Shown here: positions 10,827 through 48,858 of the stretch, one piece after another
Numbering within the stretch: the stretch's first letter is position 1
How the letters are laid out: each line of letters begins with the position of its first letter
Assembly (NCBI GenBank): GCA_000320545.1
Contig: ADNK01001791.1
Location: forward strand, 37,832-101,831
DNA length: 64,000 nt
Origin: Bigelowiella natans CCMP2755
Taxonomy: Eukaryota > Protista > Cercozoa
Reading direction: 5' to 3'
Made by a program: the position numbers and the translations under genes
Notes under the pieces: model-generated
What the model was told of the DNA's origin: nothing
The model's input: only the letters and a program-made list of their open reading frames with translations
The model's database searches: none

Positions 10827-11936
10827 TACACAATATGTATTATGAAATCCTCACCATCGCTCTATCCCATCATGGCCGTGACCTCCAGCTGAACGAATTA
10901 ATGCTCGAAACGTCGGAAATGCATCTGCGAGACACGCTGGAGAGTCGTAACAAACGGCGAGAGGAGTACTTTAAGGGGAAAAAAGAGAGAGATGGTGATA
11001 GCAAACCAACCAATAAGGTGGTGGCAGTAATGCGTCGTTGCGGTCTATTCAAGGCCATTGATGTGGATAGTACTACGCATACTTTTTTCCCCTCATTATT
11101 CTCCCATCCACCCTCTTGCTTTTACAATTTTGAGACGCCGTGCGAAACTATTGCCCACTATGCGCAACTTTGTGGTGTCTCCCAAATATCATCATTATCA
11201 TCATCATCATCCACAACTCATTGAGCGATGTATCAGGACTACACAGCGCTGGATTCGTTAAGTCTGGATATCGACTCCGAAGACGCGAAGAGAGAGGCCA
11301 TCGATCTGGCGCAGTTTACGGCTAGGACAGTGGAAGATACACGGAAGGAAATGGAGCGGTACACCTATGCAAAAGCGAGAGGTAATCGGTGGAAAGACTC
11401 AGCTGCTGCCCTTTCAAATGAGAGAAACGAGTAGATAGAGAAAGCTAATTTATTATGTTGGTGTTACTACTACTACTTCTACTATTTTTAAGTCCTCCTG
11501 ATGCCATCCCGATGAACTTCTCACGCTGCTCTTTGTTTGTCATCAATCTCCTCCTCCTCCTCCTCCTCCTCTCACCTCCATCTCAATCCGCCATCATGCG
11601 TGATCATGCCCAGGCCTCCCAGTCGACACGCAAACCGAGCAGCTGGTGAGAGAGGCGAGGAGGCAGCTTCAAGAAGAGGGCTACGAGCTTCCAAATACGA
11701 TGCCGCCAGGAAATGCTGTGGTGAATTCACTCACAGAGAACCACCGGGATGAAGATGAGACAACGAGGCGCTTTCGCGAGGCTAAGGACGACGGAGAAAG
11801 GGACGAGATGCTGCGGCGGAAGATCGAAGAGATTGATGACGAAATGGATGGGTTCAAGTCAGGGGAGATCTCCAGAGATGACGAGTGCGAGTCATTCGGT
11901 AGCCACACTGAAAGCGATGGCGTGGAAGACTTCTAG
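5162..11936 (+). CDS. Multi-exon (~18 exons) ankyrin-repeat protein with a charged/acidic C-terminal region; 5' end uncertain
   Basis: Repeated ankyrin motifs across exons (RTALYHAA, LLERGADPN..GATPLFIAAQNG, DGSTPVYVAVQN, LLKNGADP, GTTALHM, HGADIEHPDNRGFTPLM, FQGADPNQQTPDGFTPLMT, HGADVNMK); stop after ...SDGVEDF at 11936. Confidence 0.85.
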
Positions 11937-18680: not shown

Positions 18681-18780
18681 CTAGATTAGGATAACAGCAG
18701 CCACTTTCTAGGTTTGAGTATGGATCTTCTCCTGTAAATTCTCATTTCTAGATTATGGTGACGGCACATAGTCTAGATAG

Positions 18781-21585: not shown

Positions 21586-22029
21586 TGTGTGTTATGTATC
21601 GTTAAGCTTTAAAGCTCTTTGCCTGTGCATATGCCTCATGGCATTTCCCCCCTAATGAGCAAATTCGTGCTCGTCGCAATAGAAAATAAAGCCGAATTAG
21701 GAACTATTTGTTTAACTGATGCCCTTCTAGTCGATCTGGGTGTCAGATCCCTGTTGTGTTGCGCGGGAAGTGGGTTTTTGCTGAGATCAGATAATTTTGT
21801 TGCCATCCAGCTCTATCTTGTAGAAGGAAATTCAAACCATTTTTCTCTTGCGTCAAACTCTGTAGGGTAGAGAAGGAAATATTTCTGAATGTCACATTCC
21901 TTGAAATTTGATAGAACGAAGTAATTATTTTTAACCATCAAATGACGATTCAATAAATGGGCGCAAAACCATGGTGTGGATAGTTTCCGTGTTCTTTCAC
22001 CTTAATTTCGTTTCGGATTCGATCGGATA

Positions 22030-22916
22030 GAAAACGACTTGGATGCTGCTCCTGCGACAAGGTGTCCAGTGTCCAATTCATTGCAATGAACAAAACTCAA
22101 CTTGGTGCATCTTGAGCTCAAGTGCCAAACGATTTCAATTTCACAGATCGCTTCATCAATTGTGCATCTCTGGACCTGTTCGGTGCGACATCTGTCGAAA
22201 TGAACATGAGAACATTGTCACTTTGGGAGCCTTTGCTGCCATGTCTTCAAAGGAAAAGCTGTGCCTTGCTCTGGGGGCACGATTTGGTGCACCTTCGACA
22301 GGCAAAGAAATCGACAGGGCTCCGCCGAATCGATGTCCAGCTCAATGATTTTGCTGCTGTGCGCCAATTTGGTGATTTTGTCCTTCGTCTCTGTGCTCCT
22401 AGTTTCTGTCACATGCAAACCCGATCGAGATGACTGATTTCAGCTTGAACTTGGACACACTCCACCTACTAGCCTGTTCCTCTCTAGCTCCCTGGCTCTC
22501 TAGCTCTGATCAACAGATCAACAGGCAGTTCACCTGGCCCCAACTCATTGTCCTTGGCTTCCTCAGTCACAGGACACTGTGTTAGTTTTGTTGCTCAACA
22601 CCAACAGGGTGCTGACAAGTCCTCGCAATGATTTTTGTTGAGGCGCTGCTGCACGCATGTCCAGCTAGCTAGATGTGCACGTCCCATCTGCATGGCCATG
22701 TGGTTCTTGCTCACGTGGTTTTTGCATCACTGGGTCAATGCTTCGTTCATTGTTCATTGTTCAACATGAATCAACCAATTCGTTGACCAATCGCTTTTGT
22801 CCGGTCATCATTTCAAGCAAAAAGTGACACCATTCTTGCAAGTCTGGAAGTGGTGATGAAAGTGCCAGCTCCAGAGATCTAGAGATGCCTGCCTGTGTGA
22901 CTGCATCAAGTCCATT
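22030..22916. other. TpA-erased intergenic tract 1
   Basis: 9 TA in 887 nt by eye: 7 CTAG, 1 CTAC, 1 TTAG. Confidence 0.9.
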
Positions 22917-23247
22917 TATGTTTTAAGTTGCACTTTGTGTGTGCGCCCAGCCCAGGCCGGAGGACTGTGAGCATGTGTGCGTATCGTTGTCTAGTTCTAG
23001 AGTTATGCATCATTCGACAGGCCGTGTCGGCGCCAGAACCATCAGTTGTGCACATGCTCGATGACAAGTGTTTATGCACGATGCTGCTGTGTACGCCACA
23101 TTTAGACAAGTATGCGTTTAAAAAAAGTGCATGCAGATAATTAGATAATTCAGGTTTGTTTGCAGACACAGCGAAATAAATTTGATCATCGATAATTTGC
23201 CGCTCTATTGGCTAAGTTTTGTGCATGTACATATATTATGTATATAA

Positions 23248-23412: not shown

Positions 23413-24756
23413 TTATATTTCCGGCAACCACCTACCCGTCTTCGTAAATTTAATAGTGACTCGTCTCCTTTTCTCAAACTGAGCCTGAGCGAATGCCTTG
23501 TTCAACTTATTTACTTTCACGTCCCTAGAATCCGCAAGAGAGTAATGGCGTTTGGCTCGCCGAGCTACATGGTTCGAATCTTTACTTTTCGTGTCCCCTT
23601 CTTCACCTTCAGCACTGCTTCTAATCTGTGCCGTTGTCGACATCATCATCACCATGCTCTTGCCAGCACCTTCTCCATCTAATTTGCTATCCTTAGCCTT
23701 TAAGTCCTGCGTCGATGTTTCCGCCCCAGCTGTTCCATATGCTGCATCCTGAGCGACAACACCGTTGGGCGTTGAGCCGTAGGCTCCTGCTGCTGCTGGG
23801 TCATAGTATCCTCCTCCTCCTCCATAAGCAGCAGCAGCCCCATATGGATATGCTGCAGCGGCTGCAGCAGCATACCAGTACTGCTGATATGCAGCAGCAG
23901 CAGCAGCTGCAGCATATCCAGCCCCTGCATTAGCCTGAGGCGAGGCCCATCGTACTCGGAAGCAAGAATTACCGATTTGTCGACCGTTGAGGCCCTGGAT
24001 CGCTCTCTGGGCCATCTCTCTAGTAGCATAAACAACCGTTGCAACCCCCTTTCCAACTGGCATGGCGAGGCTTGTGATTTCGCCATATTCCTCAAATTCG
24101 CTCCGGACTTCAGACTCCGTCAACGTGAGATCGATATTCGTGACCAATAGACCGGAAGTTGATGCTTGTACTGCAGGATCACCACTGCCCCCTGTGCCGT
24201 TCTTGGCCACAGCTACGGAGACTCTCATGGCGCGATTTGATAGGTAAACGCCGGTCATTTCTTGCACTGCGCGGTCGCGCTCCATTTGGTCCGTGAATTT
24301 AATGAATCCATACCCTTTGGATATGTTGGTCGCTGGATCTATAACTACTCGTGCTCCCGAGACCGTGGTATAGCGTTGACGGAAGCACTGCTCTAGCATA
24401 TAGTCTGTCACATCAGGTGCGAGATCTCCAACGAAAATAGAGAATGAGGGACCCACGCCGCTCCCTCCACCCGTCTGAGCCCAGTTCAGCCTATAATATT
24501 TGCCAGGATTGCTAGGGACCGGTTTAGAGTTGAGGGTGGTTAGAACTCTTTCGGCTATATCACGGGAGCAAAACTCCACAAAGCCATAACCAGCGATGTC
24601 CCCTGTTTCTTTATTCCGGATCACTTTGACATTCTCGATCACATTCTTGTAGTCCTCGAACATTCGATAGACGAACGCCTCGTCCATGTGGGCATCAAGG
24701 CCTCCAACCCATAGCGTCTTGACATTTGTAGGCCTCGAGTAGTTCGCTGCCGCCAT
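23413..24756 (-). CDS. Intronless triple-RRM RNA-binding protein, RBP45/RBP47/NAM8/TRNAU1AP-like
   Basis: TLWVGGLDAHMDE..GYGFVEF, SIFVGDLAPDVTD..SKGYGFIKF, third RRM LLVTNID..KGVATVVY; A/Y/Q-rich region. Confidence 0.92.
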   Translation of the reverse strand: MAAANYSRPTNVKTLWVGGLDAHMDEAFVYRMFEDYKNVIENVKVIRNKETGDIAGYGFVEFCSRDIAERVLTTLNSKPVPSNPGKYYRLNWAQTGGGSGVGPSFSIFVGDLAPDVTDYMLEQCFRQRYTTVSGARVVIDPATNISKGYGFIKFTDQMERDRAVQEMTGVYLSNRAMRVSVAVAKNGTGGSGDPAVQASTSGLLVTNIDLTLTESEVRSEFEEYGEITSLAMPVGKGVATVVYATREMAQRAIQGLNGRQIGNSCFRVRWASPQANAGAGYAAAAAAAAYQQYWYAAAAAAAYPYGAAAAYGGGGGYYDPAAAGAYGSTPNGVVAQDAAYGTAGAETSTQDLKAKDSKLDGEGAGKSMVMMMSTTAQIRSSAEGEEGDTKSKDSNHVARRAKRHYSLADSRDVKVNKLNKAFAQAQFEKRRRVTIKFTKTGRWLPEI

Positions 24757-25110
24757 GACCGCGAGGAGGAAGAAGCTTCGGGTTGTCACAGTACCGAAAT
24801 AATAACAAGAGAATGAAAAAAAAGAAAACAATAAAGCGGCTATTGTTAATTTGATGCCCCACCAACAAATGCTTGTAGATCAAGAAATACACCGAATACT
24901 TCGTAAAAGGATGCAATGACAAAGAGAAGTCACAGTCCCAAGTTGGCAAGGCACGAAAGAAAATGGAACCAGGAATGGAGGATGCACCTGGAAAAAAGCA
25001 ATTGGAAAAAAGATGGACGAGGATTTCAAATGAGATCTTCAAGCTCCTCGATGGCTGAAATGCCATTCTTGATTCCTTCTGGTTTCACTAGTTAGACCTC
25101 GCTAAAGTTA

Positions 25111-25664
25111 GTTCGAGGCACTGCGTTTCGCACACTGCAAATGTCTTGCAACGTTTTGGAAGTGCAGTTTGTCTGTGATCATTGTTTCATTGTTTCATTG
25201 TTTCTTTTGGGATCGACTGCATCCAGGCTGGTTCAGCTTGTGCATGCCTTCTCATGGGATGCCACACACAAGTGGCACGCATCTGCATCATCACGGAACA
25301 TGCGCCAGCCCACACATTGAGCTGGATCGACTTGCTAGCTTGTTGTGCGTGTGCAATTGCGCAGTTTTTGTTCGGAAAGCGAGGCGTCACACGCGTGAAC
25401 GGAATCACGCGATGTGCGGGCTGCTGTGTGTTCACAGTCCAGGTTGTCAGGCACAATCACAATTGTGATTTCGCTGCATGACGAGCACAATTTCAAATGC
25501 ACGATGCAACTCAAGTGTGACATGATCGAAATGCCATGGAATTTGCATCAGGTTTGACCCGCATGCACACATGCGTTTCCATTTTGCATTGTGCAAATGA
25601 ACCAATGCAATTGACTGCTGAGACGTGGCATGCATGCATGCGCCCTCATTGCAGCGCAGCTCAC
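25111..25664. other. TpA-erased intergenic tract 2
   Basis: A single TA (in CTAG, 25336) in 554 nt by eye. Confidence 0.9.
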
Positions 25665-25793
25665 TAGCTCAAGCTAGCCAGTCCTATAGTCTAGGGTGCA
25701 CATGCAAACACATGTGATTGATGACTTTGAAATGTGCATGATACCGTTGTCGTTCGATTCTGTTGTTCATGCTGCAGCATGCACCACGACGGG

Positions 25794-26564
25794 TCATGCT
25801 AAATGAATCTGTGGCCATGCAGGATCACTGAAGTATTGAACCTCCCATCTGTAACAACCCAGACCATTTGTTGTATCTTTGTCATAGAAGTTGAACGCAT
25901 AGCAACCGTATGTTGATGAATGTCCTGGCTCTGTTACACGAACCCGCGTGCTATTTGCCTGTGTGGTTATGTCATCATAACTGTCATTGTCGTCATTAGA
26001 TGCCATGATTATGACGATCAAACCTGCACAAGATATGTGTGCCAGTCATCAACTTCTTGTTTAGATGACACCACCATAGTGTAGGTGGATTTTCCGGGAT
26101 TGTCCTGTGAAAACATAACAAAAAAGAGAGTATTTTTTAAAATTCTGAACCACAAAAGAGCGGAACGCTTCACGTGAACGGATGCGATGATTAAAGCATC
26201 AAGTAAGTGACCTTCTCTTCTGGACCTCCCACCGTACAATTAGGGGCTGCACGTGTATTACACACTGCACAGAAGTGGTTTGATGTCGAATGGAATATCC
26301 GACATTCTTTCTTTTGGAGCAGGTTAGGAACCTTATGTGTTAGTTTAGTAATCTTTATTTAATGCAGTTCATGTGTTGATATTTATTTTATTGTCTGACG
26401 ATGACACTACTAATCATACCTCGTTCAAACCAACGACATCTCCAAGAAAGCTAGCTCCAATATCCAAATCCTATTAACAACATTCGGGTCACGCACACGC
26501 ACACACACACACACACACATAAAAATATACGTGAATATTAATACATCTGTATGTAAGTATATTA

Positions 26565-26649
<85 letters not shown>

Positions 26650-26863
26650 TCATGCATTCACTCACTCTCGCCCGCAAATTAGTCACGTAAACCAATTATA
26701 CGTATTGTCCGCCGAAATGAAGATAAAATATGATATTGCTTACGTTCGCATAAAACCATGTGATCTGTTGTGGTATTTCGGGTCGCTTAATCCTCTCACA
26801 CGTCGCTCCACATAAGGCTAATAAAAATACAAAAGCTGCAAGCTCTAGTCTCTTCAGTCCCAT
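25794..26863 (-). CDS. Signal-peptide-bearing VOC (glyoxalase/bleomycin-resistance) family protein, 5 exons
   Basis: Spliced product MGLKRLELAAFVFLLALCGATCE...QQITWFYAN|DLDIGASFLGDVVGLNE|V...ECRIF...FCAVC...|...TMVVSSKQEVDDWHTYLVQ|ANSTRV..P.HSSTYGCYAFNFYD...YRWEVQYFSDPAWP; all introns phase 0 GT-AG; follows the beta-alpha-beta-beta-beta VOC pattern. Confidence 0.7.
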
Positions 26864-27524
26864 ATCCAAACCCTAGGAAGAAGGAAAGAAAGAAAGAAAG
26901 AAAGAAAGAAATATTTGTGCAACCAGATTACAGCACAATCACACCACATCTACACCTAAACATACACAGAATCACAGCATATTCGAGTTCACAATACTCG
27001 CACACGAACACACCGCTACCATATACAAATAGATGTATTCACACATACGTACGCACACAACTTACTTAGTGCATCAAATGCACACACATACACACATACA
27101 CATGTACATGTTCCAAAATACATCCACACGCAATTCTCACTCCCTCACTCATATCTCTCTCTCTCTCTCTCTCTTTTCTCCCTCCCCCCCCCCCCCCCCC
27201 ATACACACACTATTTTGTGCTAAAGCATTTCACCATGCTAAGAAGGCGACTGTCTATTGTAGCCCGTGTGGGCAGGCATGAATTAAGAAAGAGATTATTC
27301 TGTGTAATAAGTGAATGAATGGAACTACACACAACATGTATTTTGAGGGAAAAACATCTAAAAATAAGACCCAAAAAAACTACGACAATTCGTGGTTATT
27401 TTTCCGTTCGAGGCTGTATTACCTTTTTGTTTCGGGTTCTAATAGCGCGTGAAACTACGTAAATAATCCTTTTATTGCAGCACAGGACAAAACAACAACT
27501 ACAACACTTTTAGATCATTTGGCA

Positions 27525-33723: not shown

Positions 33724-34177
33724 GGTTCACCTGCGAAGACAGACATGTTTTGAGAAAGGTCTCCCAGATGGAAAAATTCAGCATCCACAGTGGATATTTA
33801 GATATGATTCGGCTGTAAGCCCCCCAGCTAGCAAACAAAACTCTGATACCTATTTCCCAGTCCTTCGGTTCCCTTCCCTCAAAAGATTGACGGACGAGAT
33901 ATGGGGAGGCGGGATGGAGGTTTGCAGTGTGTTCAACCGTATCAAGCAACTTTCAGATCGAAAGGTGTGAGAGAAAATTGTGCACAATCTCTATTTTATC
34001 CCTATAATTGCTTTATCTTTAAGTCTCTATCACTAAATGTAAGGCTTTAGGGTAAGTCACATATTCTGATGTTGAAAGTCTTCTTCTAAATCCAACCCAA
34101 GTAGAACGACCAAATCTTCTGAAAAACCAAAAGATGGCCTGCGTTTTGGGCAGCTTTTGGGGCAAAATCGCGACGTA

Positions 34178-35635
34178 ATGTCTCGAAAAATCTCTGGTGA
34201 ATCCAGAAAATCTCGCATTCTGATTCCATCGCGACATGGTTGCTGCGTGTTTGTGCGTGTCCAGATGTCCCCTTGTGGTTCTTGCTCATGTGCTCATGTG
34301 GTTTGCATCAATGATTCATTCATTGCTCATTGTTCATTGTTCATTGGCTGAAAATTGTTGTGGTTGTGAGAAAGAAAGACAAATTGCGTGACGATGCATC
34401 CCCCTCTAGCTAGCTAGCTAGCTGGCCCTTGTGTCGCAAGTGTCAGTGTTTGTGCGTCAGTTGCTTCTTCGTCCCGCCTTGATTGCAGTTTTTCACGTTC
34501 ACGTCGTCGAATTTTGTGCACATGGCTAGCTGGTCCCAAACCTTTCTCAAGGTCGAAGGTTTCGCTTGACGACGAACAATCCTGTTCCTTCTGCATCGCT
34601 TTCGTGGTTGCGGTGGTGCTCTCTGGCTCTCGGTGAGCTGCCGCGCAGTGTCGAGTTCCCGGGCAAGGAAACACGTCTTTGAGGATGAACTCATCAAATT
34701 TCTGTCGATAATCCTCCATCTGAATCGTTTGCAGCCACTCGACGTAGCCCGGATCGACCATCACACCGCACACCGCGCAAGCATGGCTGTTGCACGTTCC
34801 TGGACAACAAGAGCACGAGCACATGTCGTTCTGCTCAGCGAGGTCGATTTGATGGCATCCGTGAGCTCGTCGACCGCTTGGATGCGATTTTTCAACAAAC
34901 GTGACACATGCTCATGATGGACAAAGCAATGTGACATGCACGTCACTAGCTAGCTAGATCACATGTGCAACGTGCAGCGTCTGGACGTTGCACGTCCATC
35001 ACATTGTGATCGTTCAGCGTTTGTGACGTTCCCGCCCTTTTCGCCTTTTGCGACTCGTGAGAACGCAAATGAATCGCGCAAACTAGCAAATCACGTTGCG
35101 ACGCGACTTGACTCCTTGCAAGTTCGTTCGTGACCTGCACAAGCGCGCACACGTGGCTTTGCGTATGTTTGCTGCCACACGACACGTGCAGTGGTGCGTG
35201 CACTGCGGCGAGGCGTGACACGAGTTGCGACATGAACACTTCGCTCTGAACTCACGTTGCACGCACATTGCACACACGTGCGCGCGCGTGCAGCCACGTG
35301 TCACGCAACTGCATGGATGTGTAGATGCTCACACATGACGATGATGACATTTTGCTCTTTAGCTCTGTGTCCACACAAGCGATGCGATGCAGCAACAAAA
35401 AAGAAATGCGTCGCAAATTTAGCGTTCATTCGGTTGTGAGCAACTTTCGTGTGTTGTGTCCATTGTTTTCGAACTCTTTGCTTCAAGAAAGATAAGAACG
35501 ATGCAACGCAAGTTGATCTCTCATGTGTGCTTGAGATCAGGTGGACACTCTTTGCACGTCACGCACTCATTGTGACTGCTTCTTGATGTCTTGCTCACGG
35601 AACAGCCAACTTTCTTTCTTTTGATCCACAAAGGG
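34178..35635. other. TpA-erased intergenic tract 3 (largest)
   Basis: 16 TA in 1458 nt by eye: 9 CTAG, 2 GTAG, 2 TTAG, 2 ATAA, 1 GTAT. Confidence 0.9.
34414..34824 (-). pseudogene. Possible decayed coding fragment with a partial SAM-domain-like segment
   Basis: VEWLQTIQMEDYRQKFDEF resembles the SAM helix 1-2 pattern V.EWL..I.M..Y...F; the rest is C/H-rich and does not complete the domain. Confidence 0.3.
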
Positions 35636-35649
35636 TAAGTCAAAGATGG

Positions 35650-36327
35650 TCAAAATCCGCGAATCCCCACCTGAAGTACATGCATGTGAACTGCTGCCAC
35701 TTGTAATGAAACAAATAACCATGTAGTAAAATCTACAAAGGACAGGAAATTCATCGAAAGAAATATTGAATTTAGATTTTCACCATGATCTGGATCGTAT
35801 CCCCCTTTCAAAACGACATGGGATTCTACAAATTCTTTCAGTTCCTTTTCATCTCCAAACTAACCAAACAAGAAAATTGAAAACTTAATCGGAAGACATG
35901 CGTAAAAATCACTTGATTATTGGCCAAATAGAAATACAAACTTCTCCACACTTCTTTCGAAGAACATGTGGCTAGGCAAGGCAATCTCACCGGAAATAAG
36001 TCGCGGAAGTACTCGGTGTAGATATTCTGAAGCTGGATGGCATAGAGAAAGGGATGTAAACGAAAAAGTATAGGTAGATAGCCATGCCAAAATATGCCCA
36101 TTCAAGTGGATACGAGACTAATGAGAGTAGGTGCATTTCATTGTCTGTTGATTTTTCGTTGTGACGTATTCGACTCGATCGCGGCTCGATCTCTCAACCA
36201 CCTCGCCAACCCCCCCCTGCATACACATTTGAACTCTACTCGCCTAAACTTCGGTTTGAAAACACTTCATCATGTCGCACCACAGAACCGATGATCTACT
36301 TCGATTAGATGTACTTGCTACATATGT

Positions 36328-47748: not shown

Positions 47749-47769
47749 CTAGCTAACACGCTGGTGCTA

Positions 47770-48411
47770 AATGCAGCTTGTGCGATGATGAGTGTGCACA
47801 AGAACACAGAAGCACTCACCGCTGTGGCATTCATCTCCAGTCACATCACTGTGTTGGTTCATTTGAGCTGTGCTGGCATGCATGCACAATGGCAATGCAT
47901 GCATTTTGTTGAAGCATTGCGAGGCATTGAGATGTGCATCAATGGATCACAAAGACGAATTTGCTTCAGGTGTGGCATGCACAGATTCCACGCCCAGTGC
48001 GATGCACACGTTCACACAGCTAGACAGACGGATGTGTGTGCGTGCACTGTGAACAACAATGCACGTGCACCACGTTCATTTTGCACTCAGTGTGGTCATC
48101 ACTGCACGCACGTGCACGTCGCAGTGACGTGCAATCAAACGTGACGAGCTGCATGTTTGCGATGCGAGCTGTGGCTTGCTCGAAATACAACAATGCCCCA
48201 ATTTTTTTGCGGCGCACAACTGCTCACACACGCCAGCACGGGTGCCAGCATGCACGGGATGCCAGCGCGAGTCGCATCACGCGTTGCAGCCGGCCCGTCT
48301 AGCCGTGTTGCTGCGTGTGCTCGTGTGCTCGACAGGCTTCAAGAGGTTCCCTGTTGATCATCACATGCTGGCATGAGTGCCAAGAGTGTTGCGAGTGCTG
48401 GCTGACACCAG
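47770..48411. other. TpA-erased intergenic tract 4
   Basis: 3 TA in 642 nt by eye: 2 CTAG, 1 ATAC. Confidence 0.9.
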
Positions 48412-48858
48412 TAGTCATCCATCATTGCAATTCGGAACGACGACCTCCAATTTCACCCAAAAAAATAAGTCGTCATCCATAGGATGTCGCTGGTATAAAT
48501 ATGAGGCCATTTTTCAACAATCTCGGTCTCTCTGGAAGGATACGACGACCGCCAGGATCAGTTCTTCCCCCCCTCTTTGCGAATCACTGGTGCGTCATGA
48601 CTATGGGCGCCATACAATCATTTGCTACCCATAAAGCACGATCGGCAGTGTGGCCTCATTCCAACATATTCCACCTTCTGTCTTCGTGCTTGTCATATCA
48701 CTTGAGACTTCACTGTGCATCAATTGTCGCATCGGCGCGTGTTGCTCATGCATACACGGCTGAAAACTTGAACTACTCCAAACCATTAGCTAGTGTTACG
48801 TGTCTCACTAGAAGGTTTTGGTTATAATAGATACGATCAGCGGAAATTTATACCTTCG

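Follow-up and report, generated by a model that had tools for sequence, protein, structure and literature searches.

How more than half a kilobase of DNA between two intact genes can come to hold a single TA is the question raised by positions 25111 to 25664 of the 64-kb stretch of DNA analyzed here, which we call the window. The preliminary description of this 554-bp tract had reported one TA, inside CTAG, and a direct count bore this out: there is exactly one, at 25336, and its CTAG (25335 to 25338) is part of a GCTAGC that begins at 25334. Base composition predicts 34 TAs for the tract, or 27 when the window's TA rho of 0.78 is applied, and the Poisson probability of one or none is 6e-11. 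No 554-bp segment elsewhere in the window has so few TAs, the median being 31, and in simulations of a first-order Markov model of the window (n = 20) the minimum was 13 TAs per 554 bp.

A dinucleotide profile, which had been proposed as a check, showed TA nearly gone (Rho_TA 0.029) and TG and CA doubled (Rho_CA+TG 1.98, about 2-fold the expectation), with CpG undepleted (Rho_CG 0.85 in the tract versus 0.86 in the window). TG and CA were present in almost equal numbers (69 and 68), and the balance held overall and in each 100-bp bin, such that strand polarity was absent. The TA-poor zone extends beyond the tract. It covers most of the intergenic spacer, from about 24905 to 25795, and in its 891 bp there are 11 TAs (Rho_TA 0.18, Rho_CA+TG 1.75, Rho_CG 0.75). 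We refer to the full zone as the island, of which the tract is the core. The island also contains a perfect 16-bp palindrome at 25455 to 25470.

A mutational process with this signature has been described in B. natans. In a mutation accumulation experiment, TpA changed to TpG or CpA about 1000-fold faster in two regions than elsewhere in the genome (Mettrop et al. 2026, bioRxiv 10.64898/2026.01.13.699255, version April 2026). One region is a 186-kb insert from a nucleocytoplasmic large DNA virus (NCLDV, a giant virus) on scaffold 10 and the other is a 25-kb virophage insert on scaffold 146, and in one hypermutable region 210 of 211 de novo mutations were A>G or T>C, on TpA (10.64898/2026.01.13.699255). 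In the scaffold 10 entries of Table S2, tallied by hand, the TpA events were 91 A>G and 115 T>C, and both strands were thus affected; by their triplets, 4 of 210 A>G or T>C events there lay off TpA, namely three T>C changes at ATG and one at ATT. For scaffold_42, which carries this locus, the mutation list includes at least one event, a C>T change at a GCC triplet, unlike TpA hypermutation. The authors further reported genome-wide 1-kb windows with Rho_TA of at most 0.43 and Rho_CA+TG of at least 1.52, and 124 fossil clusters with at least three such windows in a row, that is, at least 3 kb (10.64898/2026.01.13.699255). They tied the hypermutation to NCLDV, virophage and transposon sequences and proposed a defense against foreign DNA by a DNA adenine deaminase, which turns A into inosine, then read as G; their candidate enzyme is an ADAT2-like protein, and their candidate deaminase pair consists of Bn78255 and Bn77986 (10.64898/2026.01.13.699255).

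The island carries the published signature. Sliding 1-kb windows starting from 24651 to 25201 passed both thresholds, as did the tract itself. The passing stretch measures only about 1.5 kb, and the island is therefore by definition not among the 124 published clusters. Moreover, the balance of TG and CA in the tract matches the two-strand spectrum of the mutation accumulation experiment. Per 500 bp, the window's TA-rich spacers contain about 60 TAs and 65 TG/CA dinucleotides and its islands, of which there are four, about 6 and 115; the total of pyrimidine-purine steps is thus conserved, and the gain in TG and CA equals the loss of TA. When sequences were recoded as purine and pyrimidine, which makes transitions invisible, the 6-mer spectrum of the tract correlated with that of TA-rich spacers (r = 0.74) and of the other islands (r = 0.80) but not with that of coding DNA (r = -0.12). 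In a forward simulation, each TA of the window's TA-rich spacers was changed at random to TG or CA with CTAG spared, and the correlation with the tract rose from 0.03 to 0.76 for 4-mers and from 0.05 to 0.62 for 5-mers. Coding DNA converted by the same rule fit more poorly (0.48). We conclude that an ordinary TA-rich spacer and a single conversion rule reproduce the k-mer content of the tract.

The preliminary description had read the tract as the product of mutation from TA to TG and CA, and that reading is supported both by the experiment in B. natans and by the quantitative fit of the composition. We conclude that the island is probably, with a likelihood of roughly 85%, an old footprint of the TpA-specific A:T to G:C hypermutation known in this species, as judged from its nucleotide composition. 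Acting on ordinary TA-rich spacer DNA, the process would have converted almost every TpA of the island to TpG or CpA, on both strands equally. The enzyme would be a DNA adenine deaminase that produces inosine from A, to be read as G, and the ADAT2-like protein named by the preprint authors may be the one responsible.

Motifs that had been singled out in the tract were re-examined against this background. The preliminary description had pointed to TGCA and CATG runs as the expected products of TATA arrays. One such run, ggcatgcatgcatgc, is indeed present at 25627 to 25641, but the tetranucleotides are no more frequent than the dinucleotides of the tract predict (TGCA 20, CATG 11, TGTG 10 and CACA 14, with z of at most 2), and TGCA/CATG was rejected as a special motif. 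GCATGC is in modest excess (5 versus 1.3 expected), largely owing to one 14-bp run. CATG clusters are likewise present where TA is normal, as at 18751 and 55751. Runs resembling (TTCATTG)n had likewise been attributed to conversion, of TTTATTA arrays. A tandem array (TCATTGTT)3.2 was found on the plus strand at 25179 to 25204, but every unit of (TCATTGTT)3 carries the identical choice of CA or TG, which under independent conversion has a chance of about 1/16. Because all units show the same choice, the array more likely expanded after conversion, or else it never carried TA.

Both neighboring genes are on the minus strand, and the tract lies within a 1038-bp tandem spacer. The downstream gene is a single-exon open reading frame (23416 to 24756, minus strand) for an RBP47-like triple-RRM protein of 447 amino acids. 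Upstream, the last exon of the other gene runs from 25794 to 26021 on the minus strand and includes a TGA at 25794 to 25796 that is probably the end of that gene. Location between the stop of a VOC gene and the promoter of the RRM gene had been claimed and was confirmed (TGA at 25794 to 25796, ATG at 24756). The VOC label fared less well: the upstream product is weakly VOC/glyoxalase-like, with a match to a lactoylglutathione lyase in the PDB at an E value of 0.048 and no Pfam match. The edges of the island are sharp: one coincides with the stop codon of the upstream gene, and the other falls about 150 bp short of the ATG of the RRM gene. TA content is normal in the coding sequence on both sides (Rho_TA 0.86 for the RRM gene and 0.71 for the upstream exon) and also in the 148 bp that precede the ATG (0.75).

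Because the RRM protein matches jgi/Bigna1/89018 with 100% identity, the window is B. natans nuclear DNA; its GC content, 45.2%, compares with a published 44.9% for the species. The JGI model Bigna1/89018 is 662 amino acids long and extends over 23416 to 27046 on the minus strand. Searches with tblastn indicated that upstream-gene exons (25836 to 27046) are linked in it to the RRM gene, with about 24994 to 25835, island included, taken as an intron. The model is most likely a false fusion of two genes, because the next-best relative of the RRM protein, a transcript-derived (MMETSP) homologue of 427 amino acids with 98% coverage of the RRM protein, matches the RRM part alone. To compare alleles, another B. 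natans assembly or transcript was sought by exact-protein look-up, with no match, and the RRM protein is the sole member of its 90% cluster, which has no contig.

Erasure of TA also has consequences for annotation. Within the island, frames free of TAA and TAG codons remain open for 89 to 118 codons in three reading frames. Overlapping open frames of 89 to 165 codons, in several reading frames and with no family match, occur in 25112 to 25481 and in the other islands. Such frames could pass for genes, and some of the 324 TpA-depleted coding sequences of the preprint may be of this kind. The hazard is twofold, since an island that lacks TAA and TAG gives spurious frames and the JGI model 89018 bridges neighboring genes across the island.

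The TAs that survive occur in a restricted context. In the island, 10 of 11 have a C before or a G after them, versus 36% in the rest of the window (p = 2.7e-4), and the contexts are CTAG (six), TTAG (two) and one each of CTAA, CTAT and ATAG. Four of them (CTAG, TTAG, CTAA and TTAG, each C-TA or TA-G) cluster at 25089 to 25110. A right-hand cluster at 25664 to 25695 consists of three CTAG, one CTAT and one ATAG and contains a second GCTAGC at 25673. A 14-nt motif centered on GCTAGC is present in two copies in opposite orientation (25329 to 25342 and 25670 to 25683), and two of the surviving CTAGs fall within it. In the islands of the window taken together (3955 bp), CTAG is not depleted, at 4.8 per kb versus 2.96 per kb outside, whereas the density in islands relative to outside is 0.35 for CTAA/TTAG, 0.16 for CTAC/GTAG and at most 0.10 for the remaining NTAN contexts; ATAT is absent from the islands, with a count of zero of 634. 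Part of the CTAG in islands belongs to (CTAG)2-4 arrays, and when each array is counted once, 14 loci remain among about 37 survivors. Short arrays of the (CTAG)n type were seen inside islands at 22665, 34406 and 34946. Elsewhere in the window, CTAG is very dense at 18 to 20 kb (18 and 22 per kb) and at 32 to 33 kb (15 per kb), versus about 3 per kb in other parts, while overall TA there is about normal.

The de novo mutations give a concordant picture. In the hand tally of the scaffold 10 entries of Table S2, the base 3' of the edited A was G in 20 of 206 events (9.7%), versus 20.4% of TpA strand-sites (p = 6e-5), the background being taken from this window rather than from scaffold 10. We conclude that TA is poorly targeted when G follows it, a point on which fossil islands and de novo mutations agree independently. 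Since CTAG presents a 3' G on both strands, the avoided context is doubled in it. Protection of CTAG nevertheless exceeds a model in which the strands act independently, which predicts survival of about 0.4 where no depletion was seen. CTAG is effectively immune, and the context rule constrains the enzyme; the immunity could reflect either a site preference of the enzyme or a protective modification. In the same tallied entries, TAG had 3 events and its complement CTA 17, though strand symmetry predicts equality. The main text of the preprint makes no mention of flanking context, CTAG, promoters or position relative to genes (10.64898/2026.01.13.699255).

Three sister islands in the window also pass both Rho thresholds, each with a passing stretch shorter than 3 kb. 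The first (21982 to 22923) reaches from the 3' flank of the RRM gene to the 5' side of a kinase gene. The second and largest (34088 to 35703) includes arrays of (CTAG)n and one of (TTCATTG)4, and the third (47751 to 48465) starts 3 bp past the stop of a gene for a cytolinker with CH and GAS2 domains. All four islands are located in tandem gene junctions, downstream of a gene's 3' end, and those at 24905 to 25795 and 47751 start at the upstream gene's stop codon. The one clear head-to-head spacer (27046 to 27519) is TA-normal. This positional rule was examined on the four islands, the codon-usage map of the whole window being too noisy to extend it. A further TA-poor segment at 11481 to 11933 (Rho_TA 0.25) was rejected as an island, as its Rho_CA+TG is 1.05 and it scores as a plus-strand coding exon.

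A homologous segment of about 70 bp that ends in a (TTCATTG)n array is shared by two islands, at 22700 to 22780 and 34270 to 34350. TCATTG is 6.7-fold enriched in islands (4.67 versus 0.70 per kb outside), and arrays of this type recur in other islands. The array at 25179 to 25204 resembles the (TTCATTG)n arrays of the sister islands, a likeness that falls short of established homology. At least 15 (TA)n/(AT)n microsatellites of 15 to 42 units were found in TA-normal spacers of the window, where they often adjoin (TG)n, (CA)n or (AG)n repeats, and none in islands. This distribution makes it plausible that alternating TG/CA strings descended from (TA)n.

Given hypermutation as the process, what was its target? 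One alternative is that the island is a degraded foreign insert, such as a transposon fragment, a MITE, a solo LTR or a viral piece, that was recognized and then hypermutated. An insert would fit the link of hypermutation to NCLDV, virophage and transposon sequences in the preprint (10.64898/2026.01.13.699255) and the sharp edges against unaffected genes. The segment of about 70 bp common to two other islands indicates that some island DNA is repeated, and the tract has its own similar (TCATTGTT)3 array. The structure expected of an insert was not seen, however, as the island contained no terminal inverted repeats, LTR ends, convincing target-site duplication or coding relics. The only candidate duplication, the 7-bp direct repeat TCACTAG close to both TA clusters, can be put down to chance. 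In addition, the spectrum of the tract resembles that of the window's own TA-rich spacers, and two islands that start at stop codons would be odd for two independent insertions.

Searches for an origin gave the same result. Seven frames of the tract and nine of the sister islands had no Pfam match below an E value of 0.05, and when the 118-codon frame was compared exhaustively by HMMER with 1.84 billion representative proteins, no meaningful homologue emerged. The sole match (E = 3.8e-5) was discarded, being to a hydrophobic protein with a 12-fold internal repeat that inflated the score. Rfam at a permissive threshold returned two snoRNA matches for the tract, the best with 19 bits against gathering scores of 37 to 85. 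IMG/VR was scanned twice and JGI metagenomes once for unconverted relatives by means of transition-degenerate patterns, in which TG was written as TR and CA as YA, with 0 matches. Within the window, blastn for a duplicate gave only chance matches of 12 to 34 nt, and with transitions ignored, the best score of the tract was 64 versus 60 to 83 for shuffled controls. Pfam, Rfam, repeat-end, protein and degenerate-pattern searches thus produced no match that would mark the island as foreign, though heavy conversion could mask such an origin. We consider a foreign insert possible at somewhat less than even odds, and lean toward a native 3' flank or intergenic spacer as the target.

The position of the islands invites a broader proposal, which we regard as possible but less likely than not. 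Most TpA hypermutation footprints of B. natans may be, instead of foreign DNA, short islands (0.5 to 1.6 kb) on native 3' flanks or tandem spacers of host genes, starting at or soon after the stop codon and sparing the coding sequence, with CTAG as the only stable TA word. If so, what guides the system would be something tied to the 3' ends of transcripts (small RNAs derived from them, for instance) or to intergenic chromatin, and not the foreignness of the DNA, and the system would continually reshape host regulatory DNA. Were islands native 3' flanks genome-wide, the reading of the system as a defense against invading DNA would need revision.

A second alternative dispenses with hypermutation and takes the island as functional regulatory DNA, whether promoter, UTR or terminator, from which selection excludes TA, or as an array of binding sites of the CATG or GCATGC type. 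Selection might act to avoid cryptic TATA elements, UA-directed RNA cleavage or TA-targeting transposons. The island does fill the space where the upstream gene ends and the RRM promoter must lie, and the placement of all four islands in tandem junctions, the modest excess of GCATGC and the two oppositely oriented copies of the GCTAGC motif would each suit a regulatory role. Yet many other spacers and promoters of the window are TA-rich. The tetranucleotides follow from the dinucleotides, CATG clusters are found in TA-normal regions too, the gain of TG and CA equals the loss of TA, and mechanical conversion of ordinary spacer gives the k-mers of the tract. A mutational process with exactly this signature has been demonstrated in B. 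natans (10.64898/2026.01.13.699255). We therefore regard selection for a TA-free region as improbable.

Two further alternatives can be set aside as having next to no likelihood. Deamination of methylated CpG to TG and CA, with low TA as an incidental feature, would account for the doubling of TG and CA but cannot remove TA, and it is contradicted by the unchanged Rho_CG and by the match between the TG and CA gain and the TA deficit. An assembly or sequencing artifact, which the preliminary description had named as a possible refutation and in favor of which nothing was found, is opposed by the complex, nonrepetitive sequence between intact genes with 100% identity to the JGI model, by four similar islands in one window and by the same class of window found genome-wide by independent Illumina resequencing (10.64898/2026.01.13.699255). 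The other refutation named there, a match to a known TA-free element, was not borne out either, as no such element matched the tract.

How long the erasure took can be estimated if TpA hypermutation acted here at the experimental rate. From the published 206 TpA events, 6169 TAs, 97% callable sites and 3132 generations, we derived about 1.1e-5 events per TA and generation, equivalent to a half-life of about 6e4 generations. Erasure of 97% of TAs (3% survival) would then take about 3e5 generations. Restoration is far slower, as ordinary GC>AT mutation (3.4e-10 per site per generation) at the 137 TG/CA sites of the tract would return one TA per about 2e7 generations. Because the 554 bp contain no TA outside CTAG and TA is restored so slowly, the island should be either young or still under surveillance. 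We infer that the erasure was geologically recent or that surveillance continues. So little TA is left in the tract that it offers almost no target for de novo events at the locus.

The process itself was described in 2026 (10.64898/2026.01.13.699255), and the locus is a new, small, host-embedded example of it. It shows the end state at small scale, with about 97% of TA gone from 0.9 kb between two intact, ordinary host genes, below the size interpreted by the published scan. The context rule and the position beside gene 3' ends are the parts of interest beyond the published work. The island is like the hypermutable regions of Mettrop et al. (2026) in species, loss of TA, gain of CA and TG, involvement of both strands, untouched CpG, passage of the Rho thresholds and survivors in the avoided 3'-G context. 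It differs in that the published regions are viral inserts or clusters of at least 3 kb, whereas the island is 0.9 kb long, lies between ordinary host genes and has no foreign signature.

Among systems in other organisms, repeat-induced point mutation (RIP) of fungi offers a first comparison, and TpA hypermutation is its mirror image. RIP changes C to T mainly at CpA, creates TpA, lowers GC content and requires duplicated DNA. Both are localized, dinucleotide-specific transition hypermutation that leaves a sharp-edged compositional scar, but in the island TpA was erased and GC raised, and the tract has no duplicate in the window. The excess of TpA in duplicated DNA that identifies RIP was accordingly not observed in the tract.

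Animal deaminases offer a second comparison. ADARs edit RNA and generally tolerate or favor a 3' G, and APOBEC and AID act on C, not A. ADARs also favor a 5' U, as noted in the preprint (10.64898/2026.01.13.699255). ADAR hyperediting and APOBEC3/AID mutagenesis resemble the B. natans process in producing clustered, deaminase-type transitions with a nearest-neighbor preference, but the change in B. natans is on A, disfavors a 3' G and is fixed in nuclear DNA. CpG islands are similar as dinucleotide-defined islands near gene ends that arise from a balance between context-specific mutation and its absence. In B. natans, however, the dinucleotide is TpA, CpG shows none of the depletion that methylation decay leaves, and the island is the part that was mutated rather than the part that was protected.
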